From NCBI RefSeq assembly GCF_006345805.1, contig NC_043002.1:54188001-54252000 (forward strand): a DNA stretch of 64,000 bases, in the 5' to 3' direction. The stretch is from Octopus sinensis (taxonomy: Eukaryota). Numbering within the stretch: position 1 is the first letter of the stretch; each line of letters starts with the position of its first letter. Under the pieces are notes generated by a model. It worked only from the letters and a program-made list of their open reading frames with translations, was not told the DNA's origin and searched no databases. Positions 4,560-64,000 of the stretch are shown here, piece after piece. A program made the position numbers and the translations under genes.

Positions 4560-5920
4560 CGTTCTGTGAGAGGTTTGATGCTTTTGAGATTATATCCCTT
4601 AATGAAAAAGAGAGTTGAGGTAATCATTTATACCCAGCAGTAGCCCAGGGAAACTGCATGGTTATTTTGAAAACCCAGTCTACACAGAAACTCTCATATG
4701 ACGTGGAGGAGACACTAAGAAAATAAAGTTTGTCATAGACATAAAGGAAAGAGGAAGATTTTGAATTAGCAGTCATAAGGAAGTATGAACAACAAACCTC
4801 CATGTTCTTTGATATGTAGAAAAACAAAAAATTCAGAAAACTTGGTGAAAACTTCTTGGAGTGATAAACACCATTACACAGTAGATTGTTTATGCCTTGC
4901 TAATGATACTAAACTAAAAAGTGCCATAGTTTTTAAAAGAAAGACAATGCTAAAAGAATCACTGCCAAAGGACAAAAGAGATAGTGGGTGTTTGCCCAAG
5001 AAGGTAAGTAGGTTGATGAAACCATTGTTCTTGAGTGACTGAATGAAGTGTGGTAGAAAAGGTTAAATGAAGTCTAAATCAGAAGTCTTTAATAGATAGA
5101 CATGTTTACAGCACATCTGAGACAAAAAAATTAAATACCACAGAACTTACCAAGCTGTGAAAGCCAGGTGTACATCAGATTTTACAACCACTGGAACGTG
5201 TTGTTGTTTAAAGAAACCCTTCAAAGCTGACAGAAGACCAAGTGAAGCAACTGAATAATAGTTTCAAATTTTGGCACAAGGTCAGTGATTTCATGAGAAG
5301 CAGTAAGTCGATTACATTGATCCCAATGTTCAACAGGTACTTATTTTACCAACCCCTAAAGGACAAAAGCCATAGCCGACCTCAGCATAACTTGAACTCA
5401 GAATGTCAAGATAGATAAAACACTGCTAAGTATTTTTGCCCAGTGCACTAATGATTCTGCCAGCTCACCACCTTTCAACTGGATAATTAACAAAGAGAAA
5501 CAAGTCACAATAGTGAGAAATTTCAGGCACCAAAACCTGTTGACACCTTATCATTGGCTAATTGATCCATGGAACAAAATTCCAGCAGGCAGAGTATTTT
5601 TACAGGATCTCAAAATTCTAGAGATGGAATGCCAAATAATGAGCTGTTCAGAGAATTCATTTGAGGTGGTGAGGAGTAGAAATACAAAATTTAAAATTAA
5701 GTTGAAGACATTGGAGTGTTCAGCAATCTACTTACCAGTGGGAGCAGCATTTGGAGAATATTCTGAGATTTCTCAAAGAATAATAAATAAAATGTGCTGT
5801 GTTGTAGTACAGCACATTCTGGTTTGTTTAGATATTCCAAATAATAAAAATAGAAATAAAACAGAGAAAATGGTGTTGAAATTTTCATTTATTTCAAAAA
5901 TATACAAGTACAAAACTTAG
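4560..5920 (+). pseudogene. Decayed pogo/Tigger (Tc1-mariner superfamily) transposase remnant, split by a SINE
   Basis: KHHYTVDCLCLANDTKLKSAIVFKRKTMLKESLPK (ORF 4785-5042) resembles pogo DDE TV.L...ADG.KL....IFK.K motif; WLIDPWNKIP at about 5550 resembles the pogo C-terminal region. Confidence 0.6.
5300..5470 (-). mobile_element. SINE family 1 copy (diverged)
   Basis: aagtcgattacattgatccc...ggtacttattttacc...gattctgccagctcacc matches the 39600-39766 copy. Confidence 0.7.
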
Positions 5921-6419
5921 ACATTATATAATGAGTAACAATAAAATGAAAAATATAAAAATAAAAAAAATTGATTGAATATATAATGAAATGATCTGAA
6001 AAAAATCTCTGAACATTCTCTTTTCCTCTAAATTCCAAAAACATGCAAAAAAAAAAACAGATTCTAACTAAAATGTGAACAGAAAATGTTTAACATGTCT
6101 ATTTTTCAATGCTGTTCAAAAATCCATTTTTCTATTCACACACTTATTTAGGGATTCAAAACATGCTTGTATATTTTGTCATATATTTTGATTGTGATCA
6201 AGTGGTAGCTGACCCTATATTTTCATAATCTACTCATGGATTCTGAATTTCTAATCCCATATTTAAAAGTAGATCAAAGATGAATGCTACAGATTATGGT
6301 AGTGAGAAAGAAATTTTGTCTGATTAGCAGTGCCCTACTAGGAAGAATACATGGCATTCATTTTGCTGCAACATGGATGCGTGTGTATGTATGTGTGTGA
6401 GTGCACATGTGTATGTGTT

Positions 6420-6532
6420 CTTATACAAGAATGTTGTTGATAGTGACTTCGAAGTTTCTGCCAGCTAACCCAAAACAATGGCTTTAGTTGGTCGAAACTT
6501 CAAAGTCACTGTCAACAACATTCTTGTATAAG
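6420..6532. repeat. 113-bp near-perfect hairpin (39-bp arms)
   Basis: 6420-6458 is the reverse complement of 6494-6532 with two differences; inner ccagctaa/ttagttgg stem. Confidence 0.85.
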
Positions 6533-6799
6533 ACTAATAAATAAAAGTAGAGAATAACCCATTGTAAAATTGTTTTCATTGTCACTGAACATACAAATAA
6601 AAATTTTTATATTTATATATATAGATACGAGGTCAGTTGAGGAAAAAGTGCTATGACCCAGTTTCGTGGTTTGGTGCCAGATGGACTGGCGAAACAAGTT
6701 ATGGGCCTTTGTCTTGTCACCGGTAAGGGAAATTAATGAGGTTGGAAGGTACCTCTGACCCATATCTGGTTAAGCAAAGTTGAGAAAAAAATAAATCTG

Positions 6800-9488
6800 C
6801 CACCCCTTTAAAATGCAGAGAGCTGGGGGTTAGTTGGTCAGTTTGGGCAGAGACAGTCAGTTGGCTAGAGGTGCAGTTGCCGAGAGGAGTTGAGTTGGCA
6901 ACAGAGAGTTGGCCAGAGACAGTCAGCCAGACAATGAGCGGAGGGGATAAGGGAGTGAGATGGAGATGACGGCGAGAAGGCATGGCTATTTGTAGAAGGA
7001 GCTGAAATTGTTGCAGACTCGGAACGTGCGGTAATGTTTATGTTTTTGTTGTTGAATTTTGGATGTTGATGTGAAATGTAAAAGAAAAGAGAAAAGAACT
7101 TGTGAGTTGTGTTAAAAAAACAGAAAGACTGACAAAAAGGAAAAAGAGCATTGTGTCAGAAAAAAAAGAACTGTGGAAAAAAAGAAAAAGAAGGAAAAGG
7201 ACATTGTGACAAACTGTAATCTATTGAAATGTGTCAAAAGAATTGTTGAAGAGAAGAGAAAGACTTTAATTTGGACTGTTTTCGGACGTTGTGTATTGTG
7301 CATGCATTGATTGTTGCTCAGTCGAATCGGTAATCCACCACTTTATCAAAACAAGAACTGCAAAAGAAAGTAAATGATCTGACAAAACGTTTGAAGCAAC
7401 AGCAAAAGGTGTTTGATAAAACTTCCTCTTTACAAAGGAACGCGACAAAGGCAAGTTTTATATTGGCCAACAAAATTGCAAAGCAAAACAAGTCATTCGC
7501 AGAAGCAGAATTTATCAAAGATTGTATGGTTGATGCTGTCAGCGTTGTGTGTCCTGAAGTTAAGTCAAAAGTAGAAGCCATTTCCCTGTCAGGAAGAACT
7601 ATTGTTCGTCGCATTGATGCAATTGCCGTGAATATTCATGAACAGCTGTTAACAGCCAGTGGTCGATTTCAGTGGTTTTCTATTGCTTTAGATGAGAGTA
7701 CAGATATTCAGGATACTGCTCAGTTACTCATTTACATCAGAGGAATTGATGAAAACTTTGAAATTACAGAAGAATTGATATCTATGGAGTCTCTCAAAGA
7801 CACTACTACTGGAAAAGATTTGTTCAACAGTGTCATTAACAGTTCAATCAGGTCTGGATTAACCCTAAATAAACTGGCCAGCATTACAACCGATGGAGCT
7901 CCTTCACTCACCAGTAAACATTCCGGCCTTGTGAAATTGTTGAATGACAAAATCAAAGAAGATTTTCCACTACACAGTGTGTTGTCTTTTCACTGCATCA
8001 TACATCAAGAAAGCCTTTGTAAGTCATCTTTAAAACTCAAACATGTCATCGAACCTGTGGTGCGTGCAGTGAATTTAATAAGATCACGGGGATTGAAACA
8101 CAAGCAATTCCGAAGTTTCTTGGAGGATGTGGAGGCTGATTTTACTGATGTGCTGTACTACACAAATGTCCACTGGTTAAGCATTGGAAAAGTTCTTAAG
8201 AGAGTATGGGACCTCAAAGCAGAGATTCTTATGTTTCTCAAAATGCAAGACATCTCCTGCGACTTTTTAAACGAAATGGAGAGTGACGAATGGGTTTGTG
8301 ATTTTGCATTTGCTGTGTACATAATGCAGAAGCTGAATGAACTTAACACAAAACTGCAAGGCAAAGGTATATTTGCTCATGAATTGTACCTGGAAGTGAA
8401 AGCTTTTCAATGGAAGCTTGGACTTTTTGCCAAGCAGCTGAATGAGCAAAAATTTATTCACTTCCCTCTGCTGAAAACACAGTCTGTTACACAAGAATCA
8501 TCAGACAAGTACAGTTCCCAGTTGATGGCTTTACAAAAGGAATTCATTAGAAGATTTGCTGATTTCAAGGCAGTTGAAGGCCTGTTCGATTTGCTTAACT
8601 CACCTCTTGCCTGTGACATTAAAACAACTACCAAGGAACTGCAGATAGAAGTGATTCATTTGCAAGCCGACAATTCTTTAAAGATGATGTTTGAAAGTAA
8701 ACCACTGGTCGAGTTTTATGCTTCTCTACATTCAAAAAAGTTTCAAAATCTAAAAAAATTTGCAAGAAAGATGTTTGTGTTGTTTGCATCAACTTACATA
8801 TGTGAGCAGACTTTCTCCATCATGAAAATTAACAAGAGGAAGAATCGATCACTTCTCACAGACTCAAATCTTCAGTCAGTGTTAAGAATCAGCACAAGCA
8901 ACTTGACACCTAATTTTGACAAACTGGTAAATGACTGTAGTCAGCTGCATCATTCTCATTGACATTGTTATTTACAGAGCCGCTTTGTTTTTCAAATAAA
9001 TGCTTCAGGTGACGTTTCTAATTTCAGATATCAATTCATATTAATAAACTGTTATTTCTCTTTAAAATCTTTTATTTTGGGTATCCTAGAATTTAAGTAT
9101 AATATTCATCATGGCTGTCCATAATATTAAGAGGTGGTTGTCCACAATTAGTGCAGATTTTACTAGGAAAATTCCATTCCTGGCAATTTGTAAGCAATAA
9201 CAGGCTGTCCAAAATAACCGAGGTTCCTGTAATAATTTCAACTATAGGAGCAAATAACCGAAAAACATGAACCCGATACTCTAAAAAATAAATTAAATCA
9301 CTTAAACCAGGAATATTTCACAAAATTTCCTTTCAATCAATTGTGTGTTTATAGGTCTATAAACGCCTTTAAAAATATTTTCACTTGATTTTTATAAATG
9401 AGGCCCGCCAAGGTTCCAAAGGTGCACTGGGCGGCCCGCGATCAAAAAAGTTCGGCGGCCCGCGATCAAAAAAGTTCGCCCACCCCTG
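6800..9488 (+). mobile_element. hAT DNA transposon; right TIR present, left end not found
   Basis: Right end aaagttcgcccacccctg (9471-9488), reverse complement CAGGGGTGGGCGAACTTT, a hAT-type TIR, preceded by a ggcccgc subterminal motif; left boundary approximate. Confidence 0.7.
7391..8962 (+). CDS. hAT transposase (SPIN/Charlie, GTF2IRD2/EPM2AIP1-like), 523-aa open frame lacking the N-terminal zinc-finger region
   Basis: Catalytic and structural motifs SIALDESTD, ITTDGAPS, FHCIIHQE, HWLS (RW variant), STYICEQTFS; C-terminal dimerisation region RNRSLLTD.NL..VLRI. Confidence 0.9.
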   Translation: MKQQQKVFDKTSSLQRNATKASFILANKIAKQNKSFAEAEFIKDCMVDAVSVVCPEVKSKVEAISLSGRTIVRRIDAIAVNIHEQLLTASGRFQWFSIALDESTDIQDTAQLLIYIRGIDENFEITEELISMESLKDTTTGKDLFNSVINSSIRSGLTLNKLASITTDGAPSLTSKHSGLVKLLNDKIKEDFPLHSVLSFHCIIHQESLCKSSLKLKHVIEPVVRAVNLIRSRGLKHKQFRSFLEDVEADFTDVLYYTNVHWLSIGKVLKRVWDLKAEILMFLKMQDISCDFLNEMESDEWVCDFAFAVYIMQKLNELNTKLQGKGIFAHELYLEVKAFQWKLGLFAKQLNEQKFIHFPLLKTQSVTQESSDKYSSQLMALQKEFIRRFADFKAVEGLFDLLNSPLACDIKTTTKELQIEVIHLQADNSLKMMFESKPLVEFYASLHSKKFQNLKKFARKMFVLFASTYICEQTFSIMKINKRKNRSLLTDSNLQSVLRISTSNLTPNFDKLVNDCSQLHHSH

Positions 9489-9616: not shown

Positions 9617-9647
<31 letters not shown>

Positions 9648-9685
9648 GTATATATATGTATATATATATATATATATGTATATAT

Positions 9686-9716
<31 letters not shown>

Positions 9717-9767
9717 GTATATATATGTATATATATGTATATATATGTATATATATGTATATATATG

Positions 9768-9826
<59 letters not shown>

Positions 9827-9897
9827 GTATATATATGTATATATATGTATATATATATATATATATGTATATATATGTATATATATGTATATATATT
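9615..9897. repeat. (TA)n array with TG interruptions
   Basis: Directly visible; abuts the 5' end of LINE copy 1. Confidence 0.98.
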
Positions 9898-9907
9898 TGC
9901 ACCACAC

Positions 9908-10603
9908 ATGGCTTTGCTAAGCCAAGTCCTCAAGGTGGACAAAGACAAAGAGAGAGAGATGGAAACAGGAAACACCAACCACAGAGTGTCAAAAAATGAC
10001 ACGCCCACTGCCACAGTCGAAGAAGGCAAGCAGGGCAAACAACAGATAGGCGGCGATGGGGAAACAGAAAATAACCACCCGGATGAAAAGACCTATGCAG
10101 AAAGGAACCAGTGGACAACCGTCCAACGAGGAGGAAAAAAACAGAGAGGAACTGGGGACAAGAAAACCCAGATAACATGCAAATTCTTCCGGAATGGAAC
10201 CTGCTGGCATGGAGAAACAGGGGAAGGATGCAGGTTCGCTCATCCCAGGCCCTATGGAAATTGCATCAAACCCACTCGACCAAAATGCCTTAACCAAAAC
10301 CAGAACAAATACAAGCTGCCCAGAAATATGCAGACATAGTGCGTAATGCCCCAACAAGGAGAAGGCGCACATTTGCAGAGGAAAGCAGACGGCGGCAGCA
10401 GAACAAAGAAATTTTGTGGAAATGGCAGAGAAATTGTGGGACAACTGGCCTGGATACATCGTCTTCAGAGCCAGGGGCACTCACAACAGCACTCAAGACC
10501 ACCACAGTCAAGGGACCCAGGGTGGCCACCGCTGACGCCGGCCCAGGTGCCACACCGTCAGCCTTTATTGACACCCCGGGTGTCTCACCAGTGCTTCTGC
10601 TGA
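9908..10603 (+). pseudogene. LINE copy 1 ORF1 remnant (C-x7-C-x8-C-x3-H finger), about three 1-bp frameshifts
   Basis: [23 protein letters not shown] at 10178-10246; C-terminus IVGQLAWIH...RPPQSRDPGW aligns with copy 2 IVQQLTWLH...RPPQQMDPGW. Confidence 0.8.
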
Positions 10604-13535
10604 ATGTCAGAGGTCTGGTGAAACCCACTAATATGGGTAAAATTCCTTACCTTAGGGACTTGAGCACAAGCAACCATGCAATATGCATAGCACTGACTGA
10701 AACGCACCTGTCAAGCAGTATAGCAGATGCAGAAATACACATACCGAAGTATACTGTTTTTCGGTCGGACAGGAAGGAAAGAACTCATGGTGGGGTTGCC
10801 CTGTACGTCCGTGAAGATGTCACACCCATAGTACTGTTGACACACTCCAACTCAGTCTGTGACACACTGATAGTACACATGAAACAACCGAAAATAGTAA
10901 TATGTGTCACATATCGGCCACCAGTCATGAAGGAGTGTTTGAAGATAGCCTCAGAAGAATAGAAGAAGTCCTGGACAAACTGGACCAGGGTAACACCATT
11001 CTACTGCTGGGAGATTTTAACCTTCCGAAAGTCAAATGGCCAGATGGCCATCTCCTCCCTGGAATGACATCACTTGAACAGAGACAGACAGAGTCCTTGT
11101 TGGCTCTCACAGGCAAGTTTTTCATGGAGCAAGCAGTGCTTTGGCCAACAAGAGGTGAGAATGTCTTGGACCTCTGTTTCACAAGCAACCCGATGCTCAT
11201 CCACAACATAATGGTAACACCAACAATTCTCTCAGATCACAACTTAGTAGAGGTAATGATATATGGTATGAGAGAGTTAGTTGAGACGCAGCCATTAGAA
11301 AATACCACAGGCCTATCCAGTCTAAACTTCCATAAGGCAAACTGGAAGAAGATCAACGAAGAGATCCGAAAACATGACTGGAGTGACTTCATCACCACAC
11401 AAGACACCAACACACATTTCCAACATTTCATGACAACAATACAGAACATATGCCATAAGTTTGTCCCGGAGAAAAAAGCCAGCGGGCATAGGAACGTTAT
11501 TCCCAGAGACAGGAAAATACTTATGAGGCGAAGAGCTAAGCTCTCGAAGCAACTGAATGCACGGCAGAGAAACAATGAGGGACTCCACCTGAAACTTTTT
11601 GAAACGGAAACTGCACTCAAACTTTCCTATGAGAAGGAGAGGGCAGAGAGAGAAGCCAGGGCCATAGAGAATATTAAAACAAACCCTAAAGCCTTCTTTA
11701 AATTTGCGAAAGAAACCACCTCGGTACACTGCAAGATTGGCCCACTCTTTGATAAAAAGGGCTCTCTAACTGAGGACCCCCAAGGGATAAGTGAAATACT
11801 AAAGGAACAGTATAAAAGTGTGTTCACATCCCCTCTGGGGCACATGCAAATCACAAACCCAGAAGTTTTCTTTGATAACACAACACTCCAAAACCAAACA
11901 ACAACCATCGACCACATAGACATAACAGAGAGGGATGTAATATCTGCCATAGAAGAAATGAGAATAAACTCAGCTGCTGGACCAGATGGATTCCCAGCAG
12001 TCCTCCTAAAAACATGCAGGCATGCCCTAGCGGGACCACTGAAGAAGCTCTTCAGTGGTTCCTTGGCTAACGGTAAACTGCCCAGGGCGCTAAAAGAAGG
12101 CACCATATGCCCTATCCACAAAGGAGGGAGTAGAGCAGAGGCCAAAAACTACAGGCCAGTCTCCCTGACGTCACACATAAGTAAGGTCATGGAACGAATC
12201 ATCAGAAAAAAACTGATCACGTTCCTCGAAGAAACTAACCGTCTCACTGACACACAGCATGGCTTTCGCCCAGGGAGAAGCTGCCTTACGCAGCTGTTAC
12301 AACACTACGACTGGGTACTGAAACAACTACTGGATCGCTCACAGGTGGATGTGGTATATCTCGACTTTGCGAAGGCCTTTGACAAAGTCGACCACGGAGT
12401 GATATGTCACAAATTACTCAGACTCGGCATAACAGGAAAAGTAGGTGAGTGGATACATGACTTCCTGAAGGACAGAAGCCAGATGGTTGCAGCCAATGGA
12501 GCCCTCTCGGGAAAGACAACAATAGCAAGCGGGGTGCCGCAGGGCACAGTCTTGGGACCCTTGCTGTTTTTGGTGGCGCTCTCTGACATGCCCTTGGTAG
12601 CACAAACAACATCCCTCACTAGCTATGCTGATGACACAAAGGTAGCACAGGCAATCAAAAACCCAGCTGATGCTGACCTTTTACAACAAGATCTGGATGC
12701 CATATACAAATGGGCTGAAGACAACAACATGCAATTTAATGCTGGTAAATTTCAAGCCTTACAATATCAAGCTGTAAACACATATACATTACAACACAAC
12801 TATACTGGTCCAGGAGGGATCGAAATCCCAGTATCGAAATCAATACGGGACCTGGGGATAGACATGAGTGACGATGCATCTTTTTCTTCACACATCGCGA
12901 AGGTGGCGACAATGTGCAGACGACTCACTGGCTGGATCCTGAGGACATTCCGGACAAGAGACTGCGAGACCATGTTGACACTATGGAGGACATTTGTCCT
13001 AAGCCGCCTGGACTACTGCTCCCAACTGTGGTCACCGCATAGTGTCAAACTAACCACAGAGCTTGAGACAATCCAAAGACATTTCACCAAGAGGATTTCC
13101 ACCATGAAAGAAAAGAACTATTGGGAGAGGCTTAGGGAACTCAATTTGTACTCCTTGGAACGAAGACGAGAGAGATATGCAGTGATATACATATGGAAAA
13201 TCCTGGAGGGACTAGCACCAAATTTTGGAATTGAGAGCTGTTCCAATCCCCGTACAGGACGTCACTGTGTGGTGCCAAAGGTCCCGTCTTCCACATCCAG
13301 GGTAAGGAGCAGATACTGTAATAGCCTGGGGTTCAGGGGCCCTCAGCTTTTCAACAAACTGCCAAGAAAACTAAGAGATCTGCATGATGCGGATGTGGAC
13401 ATTTTCAAAAAACATCTAGACAAGCTGCTTTCCGGGATCCCAGATGAACCCACTGCAAGGTACGAGGGTAACCTAAGGGCAGCAGCTACAAACTCTCTCT
13501 TAGATCAGTGGCCAGCCACGGCAAACTGGACTTAG
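10591..13535 (+). pseudogene. LINE copy 1 ORF2: APE endonuclease + reverse transcriptase, one frameshift near 10925
   Basis: LLLNVRGL, ALTETHL, DRKERTHGGV, YRPP, LGDFNLP, LDLCF, SDHN; RT YRPVSLTS, QHGFR, LDFAKAFD, GVPQGTVLGP, YADD; 877-aa open frame 10902-13535. Confidence 0.93.
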
Positions 13536-13617
13536 AGAGGGTAGCAACAAGGGCGGTGCCCCAGCATGGCCTCAGCCGGATGGCTGAAACAAGTAAAAGA
13601 GTAAAAGAGTAAAAGAG

Positions 13618-13655
13618 TATATATGTATATATATATATATATATGTATATATATG

Positions 13656-13686
<31 letters not shown>

Positions 13687-13717
13687 GTATATATATATAT
13701 ATATATGTATATATATG

Positions 13718-13748
<31 letters not shown>

Positions 13749-13763
13749 GTATATATATATGTA

Positions 13764-13802
<39 letters not shown>
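13618..13802. repeat. (TA)n array
   Basis: Directly follows the tail of LINE copy 1. Confidence 0.98.
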
Positions 13803-16230: not shown

Positions 16231-18201
<1,971 letters not shown>

Positions 18202-50690: not shown

Positions 50691-50806
50691 CTCCCTGCTT
50701 CCATCTCCTGAGCGCCTATTAATAATAATACTGTAATTGTTCCTGTTGTTGTTGTTTTTTTGTTTCCCTTTTGGATTAAAATTATATATATATATATATA
50801 TATATA

Positions 50807-51235: not shown

Positions 51236-51249
51236 TTTTATAATAATTG

Positions 51250-54620: not shown

Positions 54621-54949
54621 CAAACACACATGCAAATATTAAAAATGATACACTCAAGAGATTCCCAAGAATTCATTAAAAAACTGTACCAATCACTGCA
54701 ATAATCCATAACGAGCCACTTTTAGGTCACTTGACCATTTAACATCTTACTACTATCATACTACCTACATTCCTTCTTATTCACCCTTCTCTTCTTCTTC
54801 CTCTCCGCCACCTCATTCCTAACTGTACCACTATTGCTGTTTAGGATAACACCTACACAAATTTTATAAACAAAACATTCAAAAGAGATGTTTCAGGAAT
54901 TCAATCACTACTACCGTCCACAACAGGTCACTTTTACATATGATGGCTC

Positions 54950-56560
54950 TCCAGCCATTACTGCGAAGGTTGAGTAGCATCCCGAGAGAACCAGGACTAG
55001 AGGAGTTTGTTACAGCTTATGCAGATGATATCACTATCAGCATAACATCAGTAGCACACCTGCATGAAGTGGGTAAGACTACTGAGGCTTACAAGGAGGT
55101 GGCAGGAGCAAAGATTAACCAGGAAAAGTCAGTCGGCTTGCAGCTCGACACCTGGGTTGGCAAGTCGATGCCTTCAGACAGTGTTGTTGGGCGCTGGACG
55201 GAGGGACTGGTTAAGTTGCTGGGAGACTGGTTTGGACCAGGCCTCCAGATAGAGAAGAACTGGACGGAGGTATTGAGCAGCGTGGTTGCAGTAGTCGAGA
55301 CCTGGTCTTGGCGGTGGCTATCCCTGAAAGGGAGGGCAGAGGTGGCCAATGTGTTTATCGCATTGGTCATTACCTACTGCCTGACCGTCGTGCCCTGTCT
55401 GGATTCGTGGTTGACCAAGTTGGAGAGCCAGCTCTTCCGGTTTTTGTGGGAGAGCAAGTCGCCACTTGTGAAACGCTCTGTCTGTTGCCAAAAGCCTCTA
55501 AAGGGAGGTTTAGGGATGCCTTGGTTAATGATGTGCAGACATGCGTTGAGATTGAGGCACCTCTGGACTCTCCTGGATAGTGAACAGGTGTGGTCGCCGC
55601 TGGCCAGACAAATGTTCCCTGGGTTCAAAAGTTTTTGTGAAGAGGAATCCTGGTGTTCTCGTAGATCGAGGTTCAGTGAGTGGCATAAAGAGTGCCGTAA
55701 GGCCCTCTTGCTATTCCGGCACTCGGGCAATGCCAGCTGCAGGGGTTCCACGCGGTTTTTATATAGTGGGTAGATAGTCTAAATGCGACGATGGCCTGGG
55801 GTCGACTCTAGATCTCGGATTTATTCAACTGGACAGCCTGTTTTACCGTACATTCGGGTTGAGAACGTTGGACAATTTCCAAAAGTCCTTAACCTGGCAA
55901 TGCTACAGAGGTGCCTTGCTCGTTCGGGATAAGCTCGCAAGACATGGTGGACGTCAGTCGCCAACCTGTCCAAGATGCAGGGGGACAGGGAAACCGTCCC
56001 TCACGCCATTGTTCAGTGTCCGGAGATAACTGAAATGTGGGCTTATGCTGAACACCTGTTGTCCGGCGAAGGAAGAGTACAGCTGTCGACTGAGTCAATT
56101 ATAAAAACTGACCCACCGGGAGTTCTAACGAACGAAGGTAAGAACTTGCTTTCTCACAGTTGTAGCAATAGCAAAAGAGGCAGTATGGAAGACTAGGGTA
56201 AAAGGAATTAAGACAGACAACTTTATCTCTGGTCACAATTTACGATCTTTCTTTTCTTTTCATTTGAAAAGGAAGCTGTGGCTGGAGAAGTATCTGTCGG
56301 AGTGTACGTTCCAAAAGAGATGGAAGCATGTTGCACGAGTTGGGCGTGCAAGGAACCTTGTGAATAGACTGGTCAAAAAGAAAAAGGTACCAGCAGTACT
56401 CCAGACTGATGACGAGCAAGACTCAGAAACTAGTCTCTGGATGTGTCAAGGCCGACAGGAAGCATTGATGCATCTTAGGGCTAAATAGCAGTGGTGTGAT
56501 TCCCTTCATGGAACTGTCACGTTAAGTTGACAGTATACAACTGCTCTATCGTACCACTAC
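54950..56560 (+). pseudogene. L1/Tx1-clade LINE 3' fragment (RT C-terminal half + CCHC)
   Basis: AYADDITI, GAKINQEKS, LSLKGRAEVAN, LFRFLW, KGGLGMP; CPRC...ETVPHAIVQCP. Confidence 0.85.
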
Positions 56561-56609
56561 TGCTTTTATCTTTCTGAGATATTTGGAAATGTAATATTTC
56601 TAATTTATC

Positions 56610-57600
56610 GTCTAATAAGGATATTTTTGACAAAAATGCAGACTACTTTAATATGGCACTTAGTAAAGCTGGATACAAACAAAAATTGAAATATTATCCT
56701 AAAAATATGGGCATCAGATTCTTCAACATGATGTTTCCTATATTAGCAATGATTTTAAACAAATAGCCAGGAATACGAATAAGCATAGGGTAGGTAAGGT
56801 TAAATGTCCAAATGTGGAAAATGATATACAAAATATGAGAATCAATGTATTACTTCGTTCTTCTAGTCATCCTTATGTTATCAGGAATACAAATAACAGG
56901 ATAAAATAACAAACTCATTATATATTCAATAATGCTCGAAAATTTGAAAATTATGATGCATCTCCTGGTAAAAACGGCATTGTTTGATTCATAGTTCCAT
57001 TCACTAAGCAAATTAAGGGTAATTTGGTTGGAACCTTATACAAACTTTTCTCTAAACATTTTACAAAGAAAAATAGATATTATGATATTATTATCCCTAG
57101 GCTTCTTAGAATTGGTTATTCCATATCTAATAAATTTATGCCAGATCATATCTTCAATTAATGAAAGAAAATTATCTAATTTTTATAATAATTTTAACAG
57201 GAGTAAACACCATAAAATACTAATGGAATAAACTTTAGTAATGAAAGTAAATTTGAGACATCTAGTGTGCAAGGGGATACAAACCATGTTAAATCCCATC
57301 CTAACCTCTTGAATGTAGATAAAATGGCAAGTAGCAATTATACTGAATGTAATGATAAGAAACAGAGTAATAATATGAGTACTAATGAAAATACTTTTTG
57401 TGATTACAGGGTTAGAAGTTATTTCTTGCCAGTCGGGATACTTAAAACCCCAAGGTATGATTTTGCATCGATTTGTATTTACTGCAATATTCTCCTCATG
57501 AGAAGAATGAAACTATTGTGTTGTTTATATCTGTTATTTCATAATACAGTATATGATTATAGTACAGCAAATTTCTAACTTCGAAATTGCAATTGAGAAT
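56610..57600 (+). pseudogene. Highly decayed PLE of the A/B/C family (thumb + Asn-rich linker)
   Basis: NKDIFDKNADYFNMALSKAGYKQKL and FIVPFTKQI resemble KAEFYNAALSKAGY and WFVIPFGKQI of A-C. Confidence 0.65.
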
Positions 57601-57659
57601 TTACCAAAAATTTTTTTAATTGGGAATTTTATGTGTCATGTCGCCTGCAGATAGCGTTA

Positions 57660-58680
57660 TTGTAGAGGAAGAGAAGTTTAGGTATGAGTATGTTTGTAGT
57701 GAACGGAGGTGGTAAGAATGGAGTGAAGAATGCTGACCGAAATGTCAAGAAAGGAGACAGAGGTGTTGGAGATAGTGCAGGAGAAGTGGAGGGCAGGATG
57801 GAAGGATTTAACGAAAGAGAGGAAGGAGTCTAGATGTTCGCGGGAGAGTGAGGTGGCATTGATACAGTCGTCAATATAACGACAGTATAGTTCAGGAATG
57901 GGACCAGTGAAACTAGAGAATATTTGGGCCTCAACATAGCCAATGAACAGGTTCACATAGTTGGGGCCCATTCGCATTCCCATGGCCACTCCTGAGACCT
58001 GTTGGTAGAACTCGCCCGCGAATGAGAAGCAATTAAGAGAAAGGACAAGTTCGGACAATGAGTGTGGAGGTGTTGGGTTCGGGGTTGGGGCGGAGGTCGA
58101 GAAAGTGTTGAAGTGCACGCAGTCCTTCGTGGTGAGGGATGACGGTATAGAGGCTCTGGATGTCCATTGTAAAGAGGAGTTTGGAGGAGCCAGGAGGAAA
58201 GGAGAAAGAGTTGAAAAGCCGGAGAGCCTAGTTGGTGTCGTGGACGTGAGAGGGAAGAGACGCCACTAAGGGGGCAAGGACACAGTCGAGGTATTTTGAG
58301 ATAAGCTCGGTGGGGCAGTTACAGGTGGAGACGATGGGGTGGCCAGGGTTGTTGGGTTTGTGGATTTTGGGGAGGAAGTAAATGGTGGGGGTGCGTGGGG
58401 TTCGGACAATGAGGTTGGATGCGGTGTAGGGGAGACAGGAGGATGAGATGAGGTCGTGGACAGTAGAGGAGACCGTCTGTTGGTAGCTAAGCATGGGGTC
58501 AGAGGACAGAGGGGAGTAGAAGGAGGGTTAGGGTAAGGGTTGCGCGCCACACCACCACAGCTCCACCCTTGTCGGCCGGTTTAATGACAATGTCAGCGCG
58601 CCGTCGGAGGAAACGAAGAGCCAAGAGTTTGGCTGGGGAGATGTTGGGGCGGCGGTGGCACCTGGAAAAGTTGAACCACT
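57660..58680 (-). pseudogene. Neptune/Poseidon-type PLE RT fragment, minus strand
   Basis: IKPADKGGAVVVW, YFLPKIHKP..PGHPIVS, GVAMG.RMGPNY.NLF.GYVE, CRYIDD, FLD. Confidence 0.88.
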
Positions 58681-58711
58681 CCAACGCACGCTGACAAGCA
58701 CCCACGAAAAG

Positions 58712-58853
58712 TTGGACGGGTCAACTGGGGTCTGTGAAGCTGGAAGGCTTCGTCAGGCCCAGTCAGATCTGGCAGTGTTTCTACGGCTGGATGCCCTTCC
58801 TAACGCCAACCACTCCGCGAGTGTAGTGGGTGTTTTTTACGTGCCACCTGCAC
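58712..58853. mobile_element. Copy of the 3193-3383 repeat family
   Basis: ggggtctgtgaagc...ggatgcccttcctaacgccaaccactcc...tacgtgccacc shared. Confidence 0.8.
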
Positions 58854-58864
58854 GTATATATACA

Positions 58865-59997
58865 TATTTATTACACACATGTGAGTGAGAACACAGATAT
58901 TTTTGGTATCTAACATGTCAGATACTGCGAGCGCTGTCTGATTGGTCAATCCATGGTGATGACCCGAGGTCACGGTGACGGCACTACTTTTGTCATTCAT
59001 AAGTTACAACTAAACTTCATTCATTACTTTCACGAGCAGGTAGAATGTAGCCATGTAATTAAACAAACATACTATCTTTTTTATACCAGATATCACTTTA
59101 AGTCATATACACATAAAATATAAACATTTCTGGTGGTAATTCAATTTTTTGTTGCCAAAAAGATCACGACATATTTCGTCTGCTCGTTGATACTCTTGCA
59201 GTGCAGGTAGATCTATCAACAAGATGGCTACTGTTGTCGATATCAGGGTGAATGATTTTGTTAAGATTGATGGTAAAGATGGGGGAAGAGTGTTATCCGT
59301 TGTTCAACCTCTTGGAACATACAGAATGTTCAAAGTGAAGATCAATACTGGCCAAGTTCGACATGTTGCTGGATACAGGTTAACAAAGGTACCTGAAACA
59401 GTGTCATCGACGAGTGGATTGTCATCGAACCCTAGATCTAACATCCCTGATGAGGTGTACAACAAACTTTTACGTGACGATTTCTTTGATGAGAGCAATA
59501 ATGAACTTGAATTTCAACCGAGGCATGATCATTCTGGAATAGACAAATTCGTTCAAGGTAATCAAAATAAAAACACTCTTCGGAAAACAAACTATGATGT
59601 TAAACGATTGTTTGCTTTCATGGCGACATGCGTCCAATTGAATCTATCAACAAAAGTGAACTTTGTGACATTTTGTGAAAACTTAGCGCTATAAAGTCGG
59701 ACTATCTTCCTGCGGCATGACATCTTTTACAGTTACACATTGTAACATCACTGACGTGAAATCAAGCTGTATTCATGCGCGCTTCAACACGATGTGAAGA
59801 ATTTAGTTATTGGGTTAATAAAATATGGTCGTTTATTCGTGTGTAATAAATAAAATACCAAACTCATTCCCTATGGATACCGTATTTATTACAACTAGTG
59901 GCTTGTAAACGTATCTAACTCGCTTTCGCTCGTTAGATACGTTTACAAGCCACTCGTAATAAATACGGTATCCATAGGGAACTCGTTTGGTATTCTC
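58865..59997 (+). mobile_element. Internally deleted Crypton-like (tyrosine recombinase) DNA transposon
   Basis: 14-bp IR tatttattacacac/gtgtgtaataaata (58865-58878 and 59839-59852); 141-bp terminal hairpin with ACTCG-type bulges; truncated ORF with Crypton core-binding motif. Confidence 0.65.
59224..59694 (+). pseudogene. Truncated Crypton/DUF3504-family protein N-terminus
   Basis: IDKFVQGNQNKNTLRKTNYDVKRLFAFM resembles the N.NT..KT......F motif preceding the YR domain in Crypton/ZMYM/KCTD1-type proteins; catalytic domain absent. Confidence 0.55.
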
Positions 59998-60048
59998 TAT
60001 ATATATGCATGTATATATATATATATACATACATGTATATATATAATA

Positions 60049-61895
60049 TATGTACCCAAAAAGGATTTACAATACAGTCAAAGCACTAAACCTAAAGAAG
60101 AGACAAGCGTCGAGACTAAAACATATTTTAATGACGAACCTGAAGTCCAAGCTATACATACACCTTGCCACTAAAGAAAAGGAAAAGCGAGAGGCCCTCT
60201 CAAAAGTGAAGAACTTACTTAATAATCAAGAAATGAAACAGTTAAAAGAACTACTCCGTTGTGAATGTAACTCCGTATGGAACAGGTGCGTACAACACTT
60301 TGAAGAGAAACTAACATGGACGATACAAATACCATACATCCAGCCAACAACTTAACAGTTTGACAAAACTGAATCGATTGATGGGATCTCTATGAATGAT
60401 AAACCAGTAGATGATGACCAGCTAACAAGAAACGTAAGAGTGTACGGAGGAGTACAAATGGATACTGATGAACTCGCGGCCTTAGAACTCCCTCCAAAGT
60501 TCGCCACGTATAATAAGGTTAGTAAGATATCAATACTATCTGACATTGAAAAATGCTTCACCAAACTTAGATGGAGAACACACTTTAACCACAACCAAAA
60601 TCCTGACACTCAATACATGTCTGACTATAACCATTCCATACGTTGTTTCTATGATAAACGTGACATGTCATTTGACATGAAAAGGGTCTACCCTACCAAC
60701 TTACCCTTCAACAAAAGAGTATGCATGCCACCCTATACCGACGCTGCTTTGAAAGCAAAGTTTACCCTTACTAAATCCAAGCTTCTATCAGCTTTCTTTA
60801 ATTACACCCAAAGGCATATACAAGAACGATCAGTAAATAAGACCCACAGTCTTGACACCAAAATTAAGAAAGGCCTTAACAAATTAAAAAATCGTATCAA
60901 AAACAGAGAGATTGTATGCTTCCCAACTGACAAGTCAGGTAGAATGTCTGTTGACAACATATCTAATTACATTTCAAACATGCAACCACACATCAGAGAC
61001 ATGACAGAAACTACAACACTCGAATACATCAAAAACGAAAAAATCATTAATGCTCACATGGGGATGTGGAGTATCATTCTCCAGTCGGAGAAACGCACAG
61101 CAAACAACTTCTTAACCACCAACAATGAAATCCCACCCCTATATGGCCTTCGCAAAGATCATAAGAGCCACATGGATCATATACTTGGGCCACCCACCCG
61201 ACCCGTTTGTGGTGCCAACAATGCAAACAACCACAAAATATCATATTTTCTCTCACAATTCCTACGACCATTAATAGAGCTATCTGCGGATGTATGTGAC
61301 AGTACTGAGGACCTCCTTAGCAGGATCCGCAAATGCAACAACACGTGTGACCTCAGGAACCACATCGTAGGTAGCATGGATGTGGTATCACTATACCCCT
61401 CCATCGATGTAGACTTTGCTATCGACAAATGTATAGAAATAATTAGTGAGAGCAATATGATATTTAAAAATGTGGATGTATATGAACTAGGGCTCTTCCT
61501 GGCCCTAACGTGTACCAATGAATACCTGACGCACAATGACCTTCTGTATACTTGTCCCACCCGTAACAAACGAGGTAGACCACCTACCATTACCTCAGCA
61601 TACAGAAAGACTCACTGTGAGCGCTGGCAGGGCTGGATGAAGCCGGACTACCCACCTTCAAATGCACACATTAGAACTACCATCGCACATGCTATCGGTG
61701 TCAGCCTGAGAATTACACTTAAAACACATATTTTTAAGTTTGACAACAAACTGTATAAGCAGACGAAAGGCAGTGCTATTTGGAGTAGGGATCGCCGGTG
61801 ACGTTGCAAACCTCTTCATGGTATGGTGGGACAGACATTTTATACAGTGCCTAGCAACCCGTAACATCCACTTAGCAATGTACTCTCGTTACATC
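60049..61895 (+). pseudogene. Divergent Penelope-like element F RT, cut by an LTR element at the Y-I-DD motif
   Basis: LELPPKFA, IEK...KLRW, FPTDKSG, LYGLRKDHK, RPVCGA, SMDVVSLYPSI, YKQ..G.AIG...AG.VANLFM, MYSRYI then insertion. Confidence 0.8.
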
Positions 61896-62220
61896 TGTGG
61901 GATGACGTCAGCAGCGGGGTGTGTTGACCGGAAGCTGGGGCAAGCGGAAGGGGTCAGCCGTCAAGCGTGCGCAGGGGGCGAAAGTTGACCTTTCCAACGT
62001 GGGTCGTGCTGGCGACAAGACGTGCGAGGAAGTCGCTAAAGGGTTTGGGGCTAGCAGCTGCTATTGTTAGTGTTCGGGTAGGGCTGTGAGGAAGGACCAG
62101 CCATCTCTGGAGGATCTCCGTCACCACGAAGAGAAGGTAGGTGCCTCTATATTCAAATCGCACACACTCACTACAAGCTATTTCGGCAGTTCGTAAACAT
62201 TCACATTTTTTTTCAACACG

Positions 62221-62985
62221 ATGTCTGCAAAAATTAGGATCGCCAGTGACGTCGTCAGACCTTTTAACGGCGAAGGCGATGTAGTGGCCTGGATTCAGAA
62301 AATCAGGCTGGTGGCGAGACTGCAGGGCATAAGCGACGTGGCGAGTCTTATGGCGCTGTATTTGGAAGGGAGTGCGTTGTCACTTTACCTAGAGATGGAT
62401 GTCGAAGAACGGCTCTGCGATGAGAATATAGAGCGGCGCTTGTGTGACGCATACACGGAATGCGAGTACACAGCTTTCGCTAAGCTAGGTGCAATCAGGT
62501 GGACAGGAGGCCAGGTGGATGATTTTGCATCGGAAGCTAGAAGGCTAGCGACTCTGGCCGGGTTTGCCGGAGAAGGACTGGAGAGAGCAGCCCGACTGGC
62601 GTTCGTGAATGGGTTCCCCGATGATGTAGGGATTCACCTACAACGACTGCCCGGGGTCAAAAAGATGCCATTGAGCGAACTTGTAACTCATGCTCGCGGG
62701 TTAACGAGACACTCTGGGCAGAAGGCGATAGCGATGGCGGTGACGGAGGCGCGTAAAGACGGACGACGTCCCGAGAAAGAGGTACAGAAGCCCACCGTGC
62801 AACGAGAGCGGCCGTTCTCAGGACGGTGTTTTAGATGCCAGGGACCGCACATGGCGCGGGACCGTACGCAGCCAGGGCCCGTTTGCTATCGATGCAGGCA
62901 GACAGGGCACATTGCCCGTGATTGCGGCCAGGGAAACGACCGCGGGGAAGTTGCTGCCTCTCGAACTTTCCCCTCAAACGAGTAG
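62221..62985 (+). CDS. gag: Gag with zinc knuckle(s), 254 aa
   Basis: CYRCRQTGHIARDC intact knuckle plus degenerate CFRCQGPHMARD. Confidence 0.88.
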   Translation: MSAKIRIASDVVRPFNGEGDVVAWIQKIRLVARLQGISDVASLMALYLEGSALSLYLEMDVEERLCDENIERRLCDAYTECEYTAFAKLGAIRWTGGQVDDFASEARRLATLAGFAGEGLERAARLAFVNGFPDDVGIHLQRLPGVKKMPLSELVTHARGLTRHSGQKAIAMAVTEARKDGRRPEKEVQKPTVQRERPFSGRCFRCQGPHMARDRTQPGPVCYRCRQTGHIARDCGQGNDRGEVAASRTFPSNE

Positions 62986-64000
62986 AGGCGCTATTGGAGA
63001 CGCTGCCATTGATTGACGTGGAGGCCGAGGGGGAGACGTTCAAGGCCCTTGTGGATACGGGCTGTACGACCACCCTGGTGACTTTGAGGGTGACGAAGGA
63101 ATGGAACGGGGTGTGTAGTGTCCGGGCGGTCGACGGCAGCGAAATCCGTTGCAGAGGCAGCAGCAAGGTAGAGATAGTGGTGCGCGGCGCGACGCTAAGG
63201 CTACAGGCAATTGTGGCCGAACGCGTGATAAATGGAGTTGATGTGGTGATGGGGATGGACGCCATCAACTGCCTCGGTGGCGTCAGGGTTGTGGGAAATG
63301 AGGTCACGTTCGGAAGCGTGGGGGCGTCGTGCACTGCGAGTCAGGATCGCCAGAGGGAGCAGATCCCCACGAGGGACTGCGCCGCTTACACCATCGAGGA
63401 CAAAGACTTTCAGGCGGCGTTCGATGGTCAGCGGTGGATGATAGAGTGGAAATGGAAGGACGAGCCCCCGACACTGGAGAACAGGGTGAGCTGTTACCAG
63501 CATACCCTGAAAGGCCACGCCAGGGTTGAGTTTGAAGACGAGGTGGAGAGGTGGATCGAGGAAGGGGTCCTTGTCCCTTGGAAGGAGGAGGTAGCGGGCG
63601 GAGTGCTACCCCTGATGGCGGTGGTGCAGCCTACGAAGGGAAAAGTCAGACCGGTGCTGGACTTCAGGGAGCTAAACCAGCACATATCGTGTCACACAGG
63701 AGGTGAGGCGACAGACGTTTGTGGTGAGGCATTACGTAAGTGGAGACAGTCGACTGAGGCAGCGACGATTGTCGACTTGAGATCGGCATACTTGCAGCTC
63801 CATGTGAGCGACAAACTATGGCGATATCAGCTGGTGCGGTACAAGGGCCGGACGTACTGTCTAACCAGGCTGGGTTTCGGGCTGAATTCCGCTCCGAAGA
63901 TCATGGCGGCAGTGCTTAGGTCCGTCCTAGGGAAAGACGGCAAGATTAGAAAGGCCACCAGCTCCTACATTGACGACATTTTGGTGGACGAAACTGTAGT
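62931..64000 (+). CDS. pol: Pol (protease + RT N-terminus) in the -1 frame, open to the window end; absent from the ORF track
   Basis: Hand translation: LVDTG (63048-63062), KVRPVLDFRELN, VDLRSAYLQ, RLGFGLNSAP, YIDD (63966-63977); no stop codon seen. Confidence 0.88.

Follow-up and report, generated by a model that had tools for sequence, protein, structure and literature searches.

We identified a block of about 59 kb, running from ~4.6 kb to the end of the window (the whole 64,000-nucleotide stretch of Octopus sinensis DNA analysed here), in which nearly all coding transposable elements (TEs) face the same way. Between positions 4560 and 64000, 16 well-supported coding TE insertions lie on the + strand and 1 on the - strand (two-sided p = 2.7e-4). 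This bias does not come from duplication, has persisted through time, is absent from control loci and recurs in a second block. The best explanation, towards which we lean, is a strand-specific filter, with transcription of the minus strand as its likeliest form; that transcription is the filter, and in which direction it runs, we infer.

Transposon sequence makes up ~81% of the block (~48 of 59.4 kb assigned to TEs), and (TA)n accounts for ~3 kb more. The 16 + strand insertions comprise a hAT, two CR1, six Penelope-like elements (PLE), two Gypsy, three restriction-like-endonuclease (RLE) LINE pieces, an L1/Tx1-like element and a Crypton. The features of the block are as follows.

4779-5039, + strand: unverified 87-aa open stretch, no Pfam match at E≤1 and no homologue at E≤1e-3; left out of the count
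5237-5494, - strand: tRNA-derived SINE (nhmmer E=1e-71 with a model of the four window copies)
7339-9454, + strand: hAT with a GTF2IRD2-like transposase, 523-aa ORF at 7391-8962 (Pfam Dimer_Tnp_hAT)
9900-13617, + strand: CR1-like LINE "a", intact 877-aa ORF2, (TA)n-flanked (Exo_endo_phos_2 and RVT_1, E=3e-30)
14075-14555, + strand: PLE remnant, GIY-YIG region, PLE-1-like (tblastn 34%, E=5.6e-12, against the PLE-1 B C-terminal stretch)
16231-18201, no strand: 2-kb (TA)n microsatellite (Tandem Repeats Finder)
18338-22290, + strand: CR1-like LINE "b" with zf-CCCH ORF1, APE and RT, frameshifted (zf-CCCH, Exo_endo_phos_2, RVT_1, E=1e-31)
22331-25660, + strand: PLE-1 copy A, 660-aa ORF (self-blastn, tblastn to copies B and C)
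25761-28071, + strand: PLE-1 copy B, 5' part, with left terminal repeat 25761-26244 (self-blastn)
28072-33837, + strand: Gypsy-type LTR retrotransposon 1, inserted into PLE-1 B and facing the same way (DUF7041, RVP, RVT_1, RNaseH, integrase)
33838-35562, + strand: remaining 3' part of PLE-1 copy B, including the right terminal repeat, resuming past the Gypsy insertion
35673-39438, + strand: PLE-1 copy C, bounded by terminal repeats of its own at 35673-36187 and 38916-39438 (90.9% identical)
39533-39789, - strand: tRNA-derived SINE, (TA)n-flanked (nhmmer E=1e-71)
39888-40505, + strand: LINE 3' fragment with C-terminal restriction-like endonuclease, 206-aa open stretch (HERO in the earlier note)
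42279-42692, + strand: R4/Dong-like LINE 3' fragment, endonuclease domain (tblastn 62% identity to 44506-44820)
42816-44832, + strand: R4/Dong-like LINE, RT, zinc finger and endonuclease domain, 5'-truncated (RVT_1 E=9e-24, zf-RVT)
45023-49808, + strand: PLE-2 copy 1 (weak RVT_1 plus GIY-YIG, E=6e-6)
49809-54600, + strand: PLE-2 copy 2 (70-75% DNA identity to copy 1)
54850-56500, + strand: L1/Tx1-like LINE piece, C-terminal RT and downstream region (RVT_1 E=2-4e-6)
56596-56694, + strand: short PLE-1-like remnant (tblastn E=2e-6 to PLE-1 A/B)
57186-58900, - strand: PLE-4, frameshifted, the one minus-strand coding TE of the block (weak RVT_1)
58866-59672, + strand: Crypton 5' fragment, first 135 aa of a tyrosine recombinase protein (homology; N-terminus at 59224-59628)
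60356-62100, + strand: PLE-3, 481-aa open stretch (PLE-type RT by motif only, orientation from ORF length)
62197-64000, + strand: Gypsy-type LTR retrotransposon 2, gag, protease and RT start, cut by the window end (zf-CCHC E=3e-6, gag-asp_proteas E=1.5e-4)

A six-frame Pfam scan covered both strands and took in every stop-free stretch of 60 aa or more, with low complexity removed. On + it returned hAT dimerisation, APE+RVT_1 (twice), DUF7041/RVP/RVT_1/RNaseH/integrase, RVT_1+zf-RVT, RVT_1+GIY-YIG, RVT_1, and zf-CCHC with gag protease, while - gave a single, weak match to RVT_1 (57.2-59.0 kb). The resulting count of 16 on + and 1 on - is close to that of the earlier note (19 of 21 pieces on +). 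On neither strand of the window did open stretches of at least 60 aa, a length that short exons escape, contain a Pfam domain other than those of TEs, and the block is gene-free, as the same note describes the window. Its PLE remnants on + at 14.1 and 56.6 kb are supported by homology searches, which place the first at 14.26-14.56 kb, and its PLE on - near 57660 by the weak RVT_1 together with the tblastn/phmmer relation of PLE-4 to PLE-2 (E=1e-14 to 1e-16). The "pogo" it had placed at ~4.8 kb is the stretch without Pfam match or homologue, and the CR1 it had placed on - at 2297 gave no match at E≤0.1 against 120 CR1 proteins. The + strand hammerheads it had mentioned were likewise not recovered: Rfam searches at the gathering threshold, at E≤1 over the whole window and at E≤10 in the PLE terminal repeats found no hammerhead ribozyme, and a core-motif scan found no canonical hammerhead core whose helix II had 4 bp or more.

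Relatives of these elements were found within and beyond the window. The hAT is 96% identical in amino acids to an O. sinensis copy and 95% to an O. vulgaris copy, and 97.6-97.8% identical in DNA to copies at Octopus loci L007/L008. CR1-like LINE "a", which ends in a hairpin followed by a short microsatellite tail, has 3067 homologues, the top named one from Argonauta hians; "b" shares 69% DNA identity with it (dN/dS 0.07-0.19) and 94% with a copy at L008. The piece at 39888-40505 is 38-55% identical to the C-termini of proteins with RVT_1 upstream, the 5'-truncated R4/Dong-like LINE is related to the RLE-LINE proteins P0122/P0127, and the L1/Tx1-like piece has relatives at L002, L003, L006 and L007. 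HERO, R4/Dong and L1/Tx1 clades have been reported for O. vulgaris (PMC13282606). The Crypton fragment matches O. sinensis LOC115217879 (DUF3504 + Phage_integrase) at 93% and O. vulgaris P0132 at 94%, and its DNA is 93-96% identical to Crypton copies at L002/L003.

Among the PLEs, the hallmark combination of an RT with a C-terminal GIY-YIG is present in PLE-2, and PLE-1 and PLE-4 are linked to PLE-2 via tblastn/phmmer (PLE-1 copy A by phmmer); PLE-3 has no Pfam, PDB or in-window relative. Copy A of PLE-1 is preceded by a short inverted terminal-repeat fragment (22331-22591). The terminal repeats of copy B (25761-26244 and 35068-35562) are 95.6% identical, and its ORF is broken exactly at the insertion point of Gypsy-1, which has ~570-bp LTRs (98.6% identical) and a 4-bp target duplication, ACCC. 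The two PLE-2 copies carry 183-bp 5' repeats that are 96.7% identical. Many elements of the block retain long open reading frames, indicating that it is more than debris. Four copies of a tRNA-derived SINE, overlooked in the earlier note, lie in the window; the two inside the block are both on -, and that at 5237-5494 has a B-box-like GAGTTCAAATTCC head on the - strand. Between most elements lie shorter (TA)n tracts (9619-9896, 13618-13802, 25660-25758, 39437-39543).

The earlier note had cautioned that tandem PLE or R4 pieces might not be independent. We found that adjacent same-family pairs (PLE-1, PLE-2, R4-like, CR1) differ with dN/dS of 0.05-0.26 and dS of 0.7 to >2, indicating separate insertions from active lineages and removing that concern. 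Local tandem duplication, for which a dN/dS near 1 and a small dS are expected, is ruled out. In individual comparisons, PLE-1 C and B gave dS 0.74-0.99 and dN/dS 0.10-0.26, PLE-2 copies 2 and 1 gave dS 0.95-1.5 and dN/dS 0.12-0.21, and the R4/Dong-like stretches at 42279-42692 and 44506-44820 gave dS 2.1 and dN/dS 0.11. Collapsing same-family neighbours left a ratio of 12:1 (p = 0.003); the nominal p of ~3e-4 and the collapsed ~3e-3 both refer to a single window picked by eye from an unspecified number and so carry a look-elsewhere cost. The repeats of the + strand elements also form age layers: with the rate that PMC13282606 implies, the identities of 90.9% for PLE-1 C, 95.6% for PLE-1 B and 98.6% for the LTRs of the nested Gypsy-1 correspond to ~13 My, ~6 My and ~2 My. 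The same-strand bias has therefore persisted through time, over ~2-13 My.

Six control Octopus loci (220 kb), a small sample centred on hAT or Crypton copies rather than random, were balanced, with ~6 TE matches on + to 6 on - and an AT skew near 0. A second same-strand block of ~60 kb is present in O. vulgaris at L003 (OX597825.1, ~68.506-68.571 Mb), which was found via a gene model built of same-strand TE ORFs, a route enriched for such blocks. All of its 12-13 retroelement or pogo pieces lie on +. It begins immediately downstream of POLH, a minus-strand gene, at that gene's 3' end, and the O. vulgaris annotation has no minus-strand gene across it.

Under the filter that we favour, at least 17 autonomous elements of about ten families would have settled successively in (TA)n-rich DNA over ~13 My, and almost solely those with their coding strand on + would have been left. 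The filter would be a long RNA polymerase II unit on the minus strand, spanning the whole block. Insertions sense to this transcript would introduce polyadenylation signals, splice sites and promoters of their own and be lost, while antisense insertions would be tolerated, or favoured where the transcript is a piRNA precursor. Three observations count against such a filter: the block SINEs are sense to the proposed transcript, the long ORFs are kept, and the polyadenylation hexamers AATAAA/ATTAAA show no minus-strand depletion relative to the expectation from base composition (observed/expected 1.10 on - and 1.09 on +). The block fits a one-strand piRNA locus and equally any long opposite-strand transcript.

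It is possible that the transcript belongs to an ordinary minus-strand gene, whether as a long intron, as a 3' extension or by read-through, and that selection against sense TEs acts with no piRNA role; the transcript might also be a lncRNA of such a gene. An antisense excess of LINE and LTR elements within introns is well established, and a large part of the genome consists of introns and the neighbourhoods of genes, which gives this explanation a high prior. L003 abuts the 3' end of POLH, and the SINEs, having neither polyadenylation nor splice signals, are unbiased as the model expects. However, the bias far exceeds known intron values (P = 0.002-0.05 for antisense fractions of 0.6-0.75), the minus strand has no exon-like non-TE domain in stretches of at least 60 aa (short exons are missed at this length), the hexamers lack strand-specific depletion, and no minus-strand gene is annotated over L003.

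More doubtful is that the block is a uni-strand piRNA cluster, in which a single minus-strand precursor would be processed into piRNAs antisense to nearly every autonomous TE family of the genome, and antisense insertions would be kept for the silencing they confer. Of the flamenco-like cluster proposed in the earlier note, the gene-free, ~81% TE, at least 59-kb block stands, with an orientation that is near-uniform for target-primed (TPRT), integrase and DNA-transposon elements alike, while the expected Gypsy-specific bias does not and the SINEs face the opposite way. The block is a TE-dense, gene-poor locus of the tens to hundreds of kb seen in clusters, and its TE copies are overwhelmingly one-stranded (16:1, or 12:1 collapsed). 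A bias of ~94% is within the flam-like range and far above usual intron values: 16 or more out of 17 has a probability of 0.48 at p=0.9 and of 0.007 at p=0.65. Many families are sampled, young and old copies alike. L003 lies outside any annotated minus-strand gene and just downstream of one, much as flamenco adjoins DIP1. Flam-like loci were first spotted by genomic TE strand bias and later confirmed by sRNA-seq (PMC10643416), the main slug piRNA clusters are unidirectional (PMC12506671), and molluscan piRNAs are expressed in germline and soma (PMC6128900). Against this, clusters cover ~0.3% of a mollusc genome (PMC6128900), a low prior, and the enrichment and bias of flam-like loci are borne by Gypsy/ERV elements and confined to Gypsy (PMC10643416), whereas here 2 of 17 elements are Gypsy-type and the bias is borne by CR1, RLE-LINE, L1/Tx1-like, PLE, hAT and Crypton. 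Finding a second block among a handful of loci also suggests that such blocks are commoner than typical piRNA clusters.

An origin with no transcript at all, by fixed-orientation homing to (TA)n or element tails, or by replication-direction bias, plus chance and window choice, is unlikely. In its favour, (TA)n bounds nearly every element, head-to-tail arrays of a single family occur commonly in this genome (such as those of 2-5 SINE copies at L005-L007), the PLE and R4 neighbours of the window are head to tail though of distinct lineages, and, with collapsing and the SINEs taken into account, p is ~0.003-0.004, a value that many of tens of thousands of windows would reach by chance. However, (TA)n is identical to its reverse complement and so gives no orientation, families that are unrelated and differ in their tails face the same way, runs in the controls never exceed same-family arrays, and a second block exists. 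Moreover, an insertion mechanism is an unlikely cause because all seven elements that are not target-primed share the strand: Gypsy-1, Gypsy-2, the hAT and the Crypton in the window, and two Gypsy pieces and a pogo-like ORF at L003.

Repeats make up about two-thirds of cephalopod genomes, and the activity of TEs in the octopus brain is a matter of debate. In the literature searched, we found no description of cephalopod piRNA clusters or of the origin of octopus piRNAs. We put forward, as speculation, that Octopus has discrete domains of at least 60 kb with practically all autonomous TEs, of any class, on one strand, and that the window and the POLH block might be the first cephalopod uni-strand piRNA master loci, guarding beyond Gypsy-type elements against LINEs, Penelope-like elements and DNA transposons. 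If they are piRNA source loci, they would give concrete coordinates for a cephalopod's TE-control system and an example of a one-strand cluster without Gypsy specialisation. If they are ordinary long transcription units, they would represent an unusually strong TE orientation filter, with a bearing on gene annotation; the O. vulgaris annotation makes one same-strand block a spurious 59-kb gene.

Compared with known systems, the block shares with intronic antisense bias a one-strand excess of autonomous TEs that little affects SINEs, but reported intronic antisense fractions are moderate, roughly 55-80%, against ~94% here, and no flanking exons were seen within the window. As in Penelope-like arrays with direct terminal repeats, PLE-1 B and C carry such repeats and sit head to tail; unlike those arrays, neighbouring copies here come from lineages dS 0.7 to >2 apart, indicating neither one insertion nor local duplication, and no hammerhead motif was found. 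Flamenco and flam-like loci (PMC10643416) are similarly gene-poor, TE-dense, tens to hundreds of kb long and mostly one-stranded, with nested insertions of differing age, and are recognisable from per-strand TE content. They differ in being specific to Gypsy-type LTR elements, whereas LINEs and Penelope-like elements dominate here beside two Gypsy copies, and in the documented transcription, promoter and piRNAs of flam. The clusters of gastropods (Deroceras laeve, Arion vulgaris; PMC12506671), Lymnaea and oyster (PMC6128900) were defined by small-RNA reads and the octopus block by its DNA sequence. These species belong to the same phylum as the octopus, and their major clusters, numbering in the tens to hundreds, are one-stranded and repeat-rich, as is the block described here.

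We collected stop-free stretches of at least 60 aa from all six frames, discarded the low-complexity ones and packed the rest by strand and position into 40 pseudo-proteins, all of which were scanned against Pfam. On the minus strand, 16 packs yielded a single weak RVT_1 match at 57.2-59.0 kb, and among these stretches non-TE families had zero matches on both strands of the window. The transposable elements (TEs) and related features are as follows, several with the source of the assignment in brackets:

909-1162, plus strand: tRNA-derived SINE
2600-2858, 5237-5494 and 39533-39789, minus strand: three further SINE copies
7.3-9.0 kb, plus strand: hAT dimerisation domain (Pfam)
10.9-13.5 kb, plus strand: CR1-like LINE with APE and RT (Pfam)
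14.26-14.56 kb and 56.6 kb, plus strand: remnants of Penelope-like elements, PLEs (self-comparison)
16231-18201: 2-kb (TA)n microsatellite, almost pure (990 units, 84% matches)
18.3-22.2 kb, plus strand: second CR1-like LINE with zf-CCCH ORF1, APE and RT (Pfam)
22.33-25.66 kb, plus strand: PLE-1 copy A (self-comparison)
25.76-35.56 kb, plus strand: PLE-1 copy B (self-comparison)
28.6-32.6 kb, plus strand: full Gypsy-type set from DUF7041 to integrase (Pfam)
35.67-39.44 kb, plus strand: PLE-1 copy C (self-comparison)
39888-40505, plus strand: piece of a restriction-like endonuclease LINE (RLE), a 206-aa stretch matching the C-terminal restriction-like endonuclease domain of proteins with RT upstream
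42.28-42.69 kb and 42.8-44.8 kb, plus strand: fragment and copy of a related LINE, the copy with RT and zf-RVT (Pfam)
45.0-49.8 and 49.8-54.6 kb, plus strand: two copies of PLE-2 (self-comparison), bearing a weak RT and a GIY-YIG match at 46.6-49 kb (Pfam)
54.9-55.8 kb, plus strand: RT (Pfam)
57.2-58.9 kb, minus strand: PLE-4, frameshifted (self-comparison)
59224-59628, plus strand: N-terminal part of a Crypton (homology search)
60.36-61.8 kb, plus strand by ORF length: PLE-3, a 481-aa ORF with PLE-like RT motifs
62.2-63.5 kb, plus strand: zf-CCHC and gag protease (Pfam)

Counted as insertions, the coding elements divided 16:1 between the plus and minus strands (p = 2.7e-4). The ratio was 12:1 when same-family neighbours were collapsed (p = 3.4e-3), and 16:3 when the SINEs were added (p = 4.4e-3). 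Open stretches of at least 100 aa, counted without overlap across the window, totalled 13,310 aa on plus and 1,000 aa on minus; this cruder measure agrees with the Pfam scan. The strong same-strand orientation described in the earlier note, which had listed 19 plus-strand and two minus-strand pieces, is real and was borne out by the 16:1 count. Its list of TEs was essentially right and its details somewhat over-specified: the pogo element at 4.8 kb had no Pfam match at E<=1 and no homologue, the minus-strand CR1 at 2297 found no match in the homology search, and the plus-strand hammerheads were negative in Rfam at three stringencies and in a core-motif scan.

With Pfam at E<=1, the pogo, RLE, Crypton, PLE-1 and PLE-3 pieces and three minus-strand ORFs gave no informative match, and a PDB sequence search with PLE-1 was negative. 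PLE-3 had no detectable relative in Pfam (E<=1), in the PDB sequence search or within the window; judged by its RT motifs alone, it is a putative PLE. The Crypton piece covers the N-terminal 135 aa of a DUF3504/tyrosine-recombinase protein, with 93-94% identity to proteins of O. sinensis and O. vulgaris, and the hAT transposase ORF (7391-8962) shares 96% identity with annotated copies in O. sinensis and 95% with those in O. vulgaris. The window thus almost certainly belongs to the O. vulgaris/sinensis group; exact look-ups of three of its ORF products found no recorded protein, and every match in the homology searches stayed below 100%. The same hAT (GTF2IRD2-like, 7339-9454) is 79-81% identical to proteins of Oratosquilla (mantis shrimp), Palaemon (prawn) and Scyliorhinus (catshark) and only ~51% identical to that of Elysia (sea slug), a distribution suggestive of horizontal transfer between marine animals. 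For the CR1 ORF2, the best named relative came from Argonauta hians. The clade names HERO, R4/Dong and L1/Tx1 given in the earlier note are putative; all three clades have been reported in O. vulgaris (PMC13282606). The 3′ ends of the two CR1-like LINEs (13530-13617 and 22200-22285) share a conserved 25-nt motif, GGCGGTGCCCCAGCATGGCC..., in a hairpin-like 3′ UTR, followed by an element-specific short microsatellite, (GTAAAAGA)3 or (AATC)5, and then by (TA)n; the motif also marks truncated copies in three of the other Octopus loci (L003-L005). A possible short CR1 tail at ~39.85 kb was dropped, as its blastn-short match was not significant.

TEs were assigned to ~48 of the 59.4 kb of the block at 4560-64000, and (TA)n bounds nearly every element (9.6-9.9, 13.6-13.8, 16.2-18.2, 22.3, 25.7, 35.6, 39.4-39.5 and 39.8 kb). 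It is plausible that TA-rich microsatellite DNA served as a landing pad and accounts for the pile-up of TEs; since (TA)n reads the same on both strands, their common orientation cannot be set by it. The 2-kb tract also gives rise to long spurious ORFs in either direction and to dozens of Rfam miRNA-family matches below threshold; such matches at E<1 were rejected as (TA)n/(TG)n artefacts. Other repeats were seen as well. An unclassified one is found at 2947-3368, near the left edge of the window, and again in the same orientation at 58532-58885, where it immediately precedes the Crypton fragment (protein level, 84-88%), and a 94% identical 100-bp piece of it lies on the opposite strand of L003 (14749-14849). 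Two perfect-centre palindromes (6419-6533, 115 bp; 59846-60002, 157 bp; ~82% self-complementary) and a pair of inverted repeats separated by 200 bp (41211-41314/41511-41622, 93%) may be MITE-like or hairpin-forming elements.

The SINE, ~250 bp long with four copies in the window, had been overlooked by the earlier note. Its sense strand was set by a polymerase III box-like head, its likeness to tRNA being confined to box motifs, and ARAGORN found no tRNA gene. By this head, both block copies are opposite to the other block elements. SINE density was 0.06/kb in the whole window (two copies in the block), 0.01/kb in L003 and ~0.2-0.3 copies/kb in control loci L005-L007, the SINE being much rarer in the other controls. 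Arrays of 2-5 head-to-tail copies occur in control loci, for example at 34436-35152 and 12325-12930 of L007.

We then considered whether the neighbouring copies count as independent insertions. PLE-1 copies A, B and C are arranged head-to-tail, and the same-family neighbours (PLE-1 A/B/C, the PLE-2 pair, the R4-like pair and the CR1 pair) differ by a dS from 0.7 to above saturation with dN/dS of 0.05-0.26. This divergence under purifying selection indicates that they arose in active lineages before insertion, and dN/dS ruled out local tandem duplication of the PLE and R4 neighbours. PLE-1 B and PLE-1 C are each framed by direct terminal repeats of their own, 95.6% identical in B and 90.9% in C; Gypsy-1, nested in PLE-1 B, has LTRs of 98.6% identity and is marked by a 4-bp target duplication. 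At the rate implied by an O. vulgaris repeat study (JC 0.09 for 25 My; PMC13282606), PLE-1 C would have inserted ~13, PLE-1 B ~6 and Gypsy-1 ~2 My ago, all on the plus strand. Judged by these sequence comparisons, the same-family neighbours are separate events in time, and tandem copies do not explain the bias away. The earlier caution about non-independence survives in part: because head-to-tail single-family arrays are common in the Octopus genome, the insertions may still be linked in site and orientation, which is why we give several counts (16:1, 12:1 and 16:3).

For comparison, seven other Octopus loci were fetched via proteins from the homology searches. Six of them (L002, L004, L005, L006, L007 and L008; 220 kb in total, O. 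sinensis and O. vulgaris sequence around hAT or Crypton copies) served as controls and were compared with the window by means of an identical TE-protein library and ORF metric. The controls were balanced, with ~six TE matches per strand with the central gene left out, roughly equal open-stretch totals per strand and an AT skew of -0.03 to +0.03. Strand counts by blastn between the window and the loci were set aside, because the orientation of the loci confounds them. In the window, GC was 28-49% per 4-kb bin, the plus strand was A-rich all along and the AT skew was +0.09. The AT/GC skew of the block is real, but TE sense-strand composition accounts for it, and it was rejected as an independent sign of transcription.

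The seventh locus, L003 (O. vulgaris OX597825.1:68,501,018-68,580,161), proved to be a second same-strand block. All its TE matches from 5 to 65 kb were on the plus strand (PLE-1 twice, RLE-LINE/PLE-2, Crypton, PLE-2, a pogo-like DDE_1 ORF, Gypsy twice, CR1 twice, mariner twice and L1/Tx1-like three times), minus-strand matches were confined to 0.4-2.9 kb, and the AT skew was +0.10, close to that of the window. The detected autonomous TEs are one-stranded over ~65 kb (5,000-70,000). POLH lies on the minus strand to the right of the block, its last exon spanning 72,630-73,901, so that the block is directly downstream of a minus-strand gene and not inside an annotated one. The O. vulgaris annotation places here a 59-kb, 608-aa 'hypothetical protein' gene (P0132) strung from Crypton and mariner ORFs. 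As L003 was reached via P0132, ascertainment accounts for the shared orientation of the three Crypton/mariner pieces of this model, and blocks of this kind are favoured by the route; the remaining 12-13 pieces lie outside the model. L003 is neither the window nor its orthologue, as two 50-mers (<=3 mismatches) were absent and the element order differs. A tandem repeat of ~1.58 kb period was also seen at 27,000-32,000 of L003, each unit having the same 118-aa and 147-aa plus-strand open stretches.

All seven elements that do not move by TPRT lie on the common strand (Gypsy-1, Gypsy-2, hAT and Crypton in the window; two Gypsy and the pogo-like element in L003). As these use integrase, transposase or tyrosine recombinase, their co-orientation points to a filter on the inserted copy and not to insertion chemistry. 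The filter would be transcription across the region, the known filter of this type; autonomous TEs in sense orientation introduce terminators, splice sites and promoters. The transcript would run on the minus strand and could be a piRNA precursor, a host-gene intron or 3′ read-through, or another long non-coding RNA. Polyadenylation hexamers showed no strand-specific depletion, which speaks mildly against any strong purge of terminators; an asymmetry of polyadenylation signals was uninformative, base composition accounting for it. An ordinary transcription unit is a possible, tentatively held explanation, favoured by its prior since transcribed genic DNA is a large fraction of the genome, and the strength of the bias goes against it: the probability of at least 16 of 17 is 0.0001 at 50% antisense, 0.007 at 65% and 0.48 at 90%, which favours a piRNA precursor. 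The uni-strand piRNA cluster of the earlier note comes close behind, still at a low probability; its prior is small, as such clusters make up ~0.3% of a mollusc genome (PMC6128900), and it is a reasonable candidate, not a finding. Non-transcriptional causes, chance and window selection take up the remaining probability, and the seven elements argue against a cause in LINE/PLE insertion chemistry or replication direction.

We found no description of cephalopod piRNA clusters in a literature search. What this analysis most usefully provides is the coordinates of two candidate loci, namely the window and the block next to POLH. In Drosophila, flam-like loci were found by per-strand LTR content and confirmed later by small RNAs (PMC10643416). 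The bias at those loci is confined to Gypsy, whereas Gypsy is a minority in the octopus block; in structure the block resembles a uni-strand cluster, and it departs from the Gypsy-specific pattern. In slugs, the major piRNA clusters are unidirectional (PMC12506671), so that one-stranded clusters are to be expected in molluscs.
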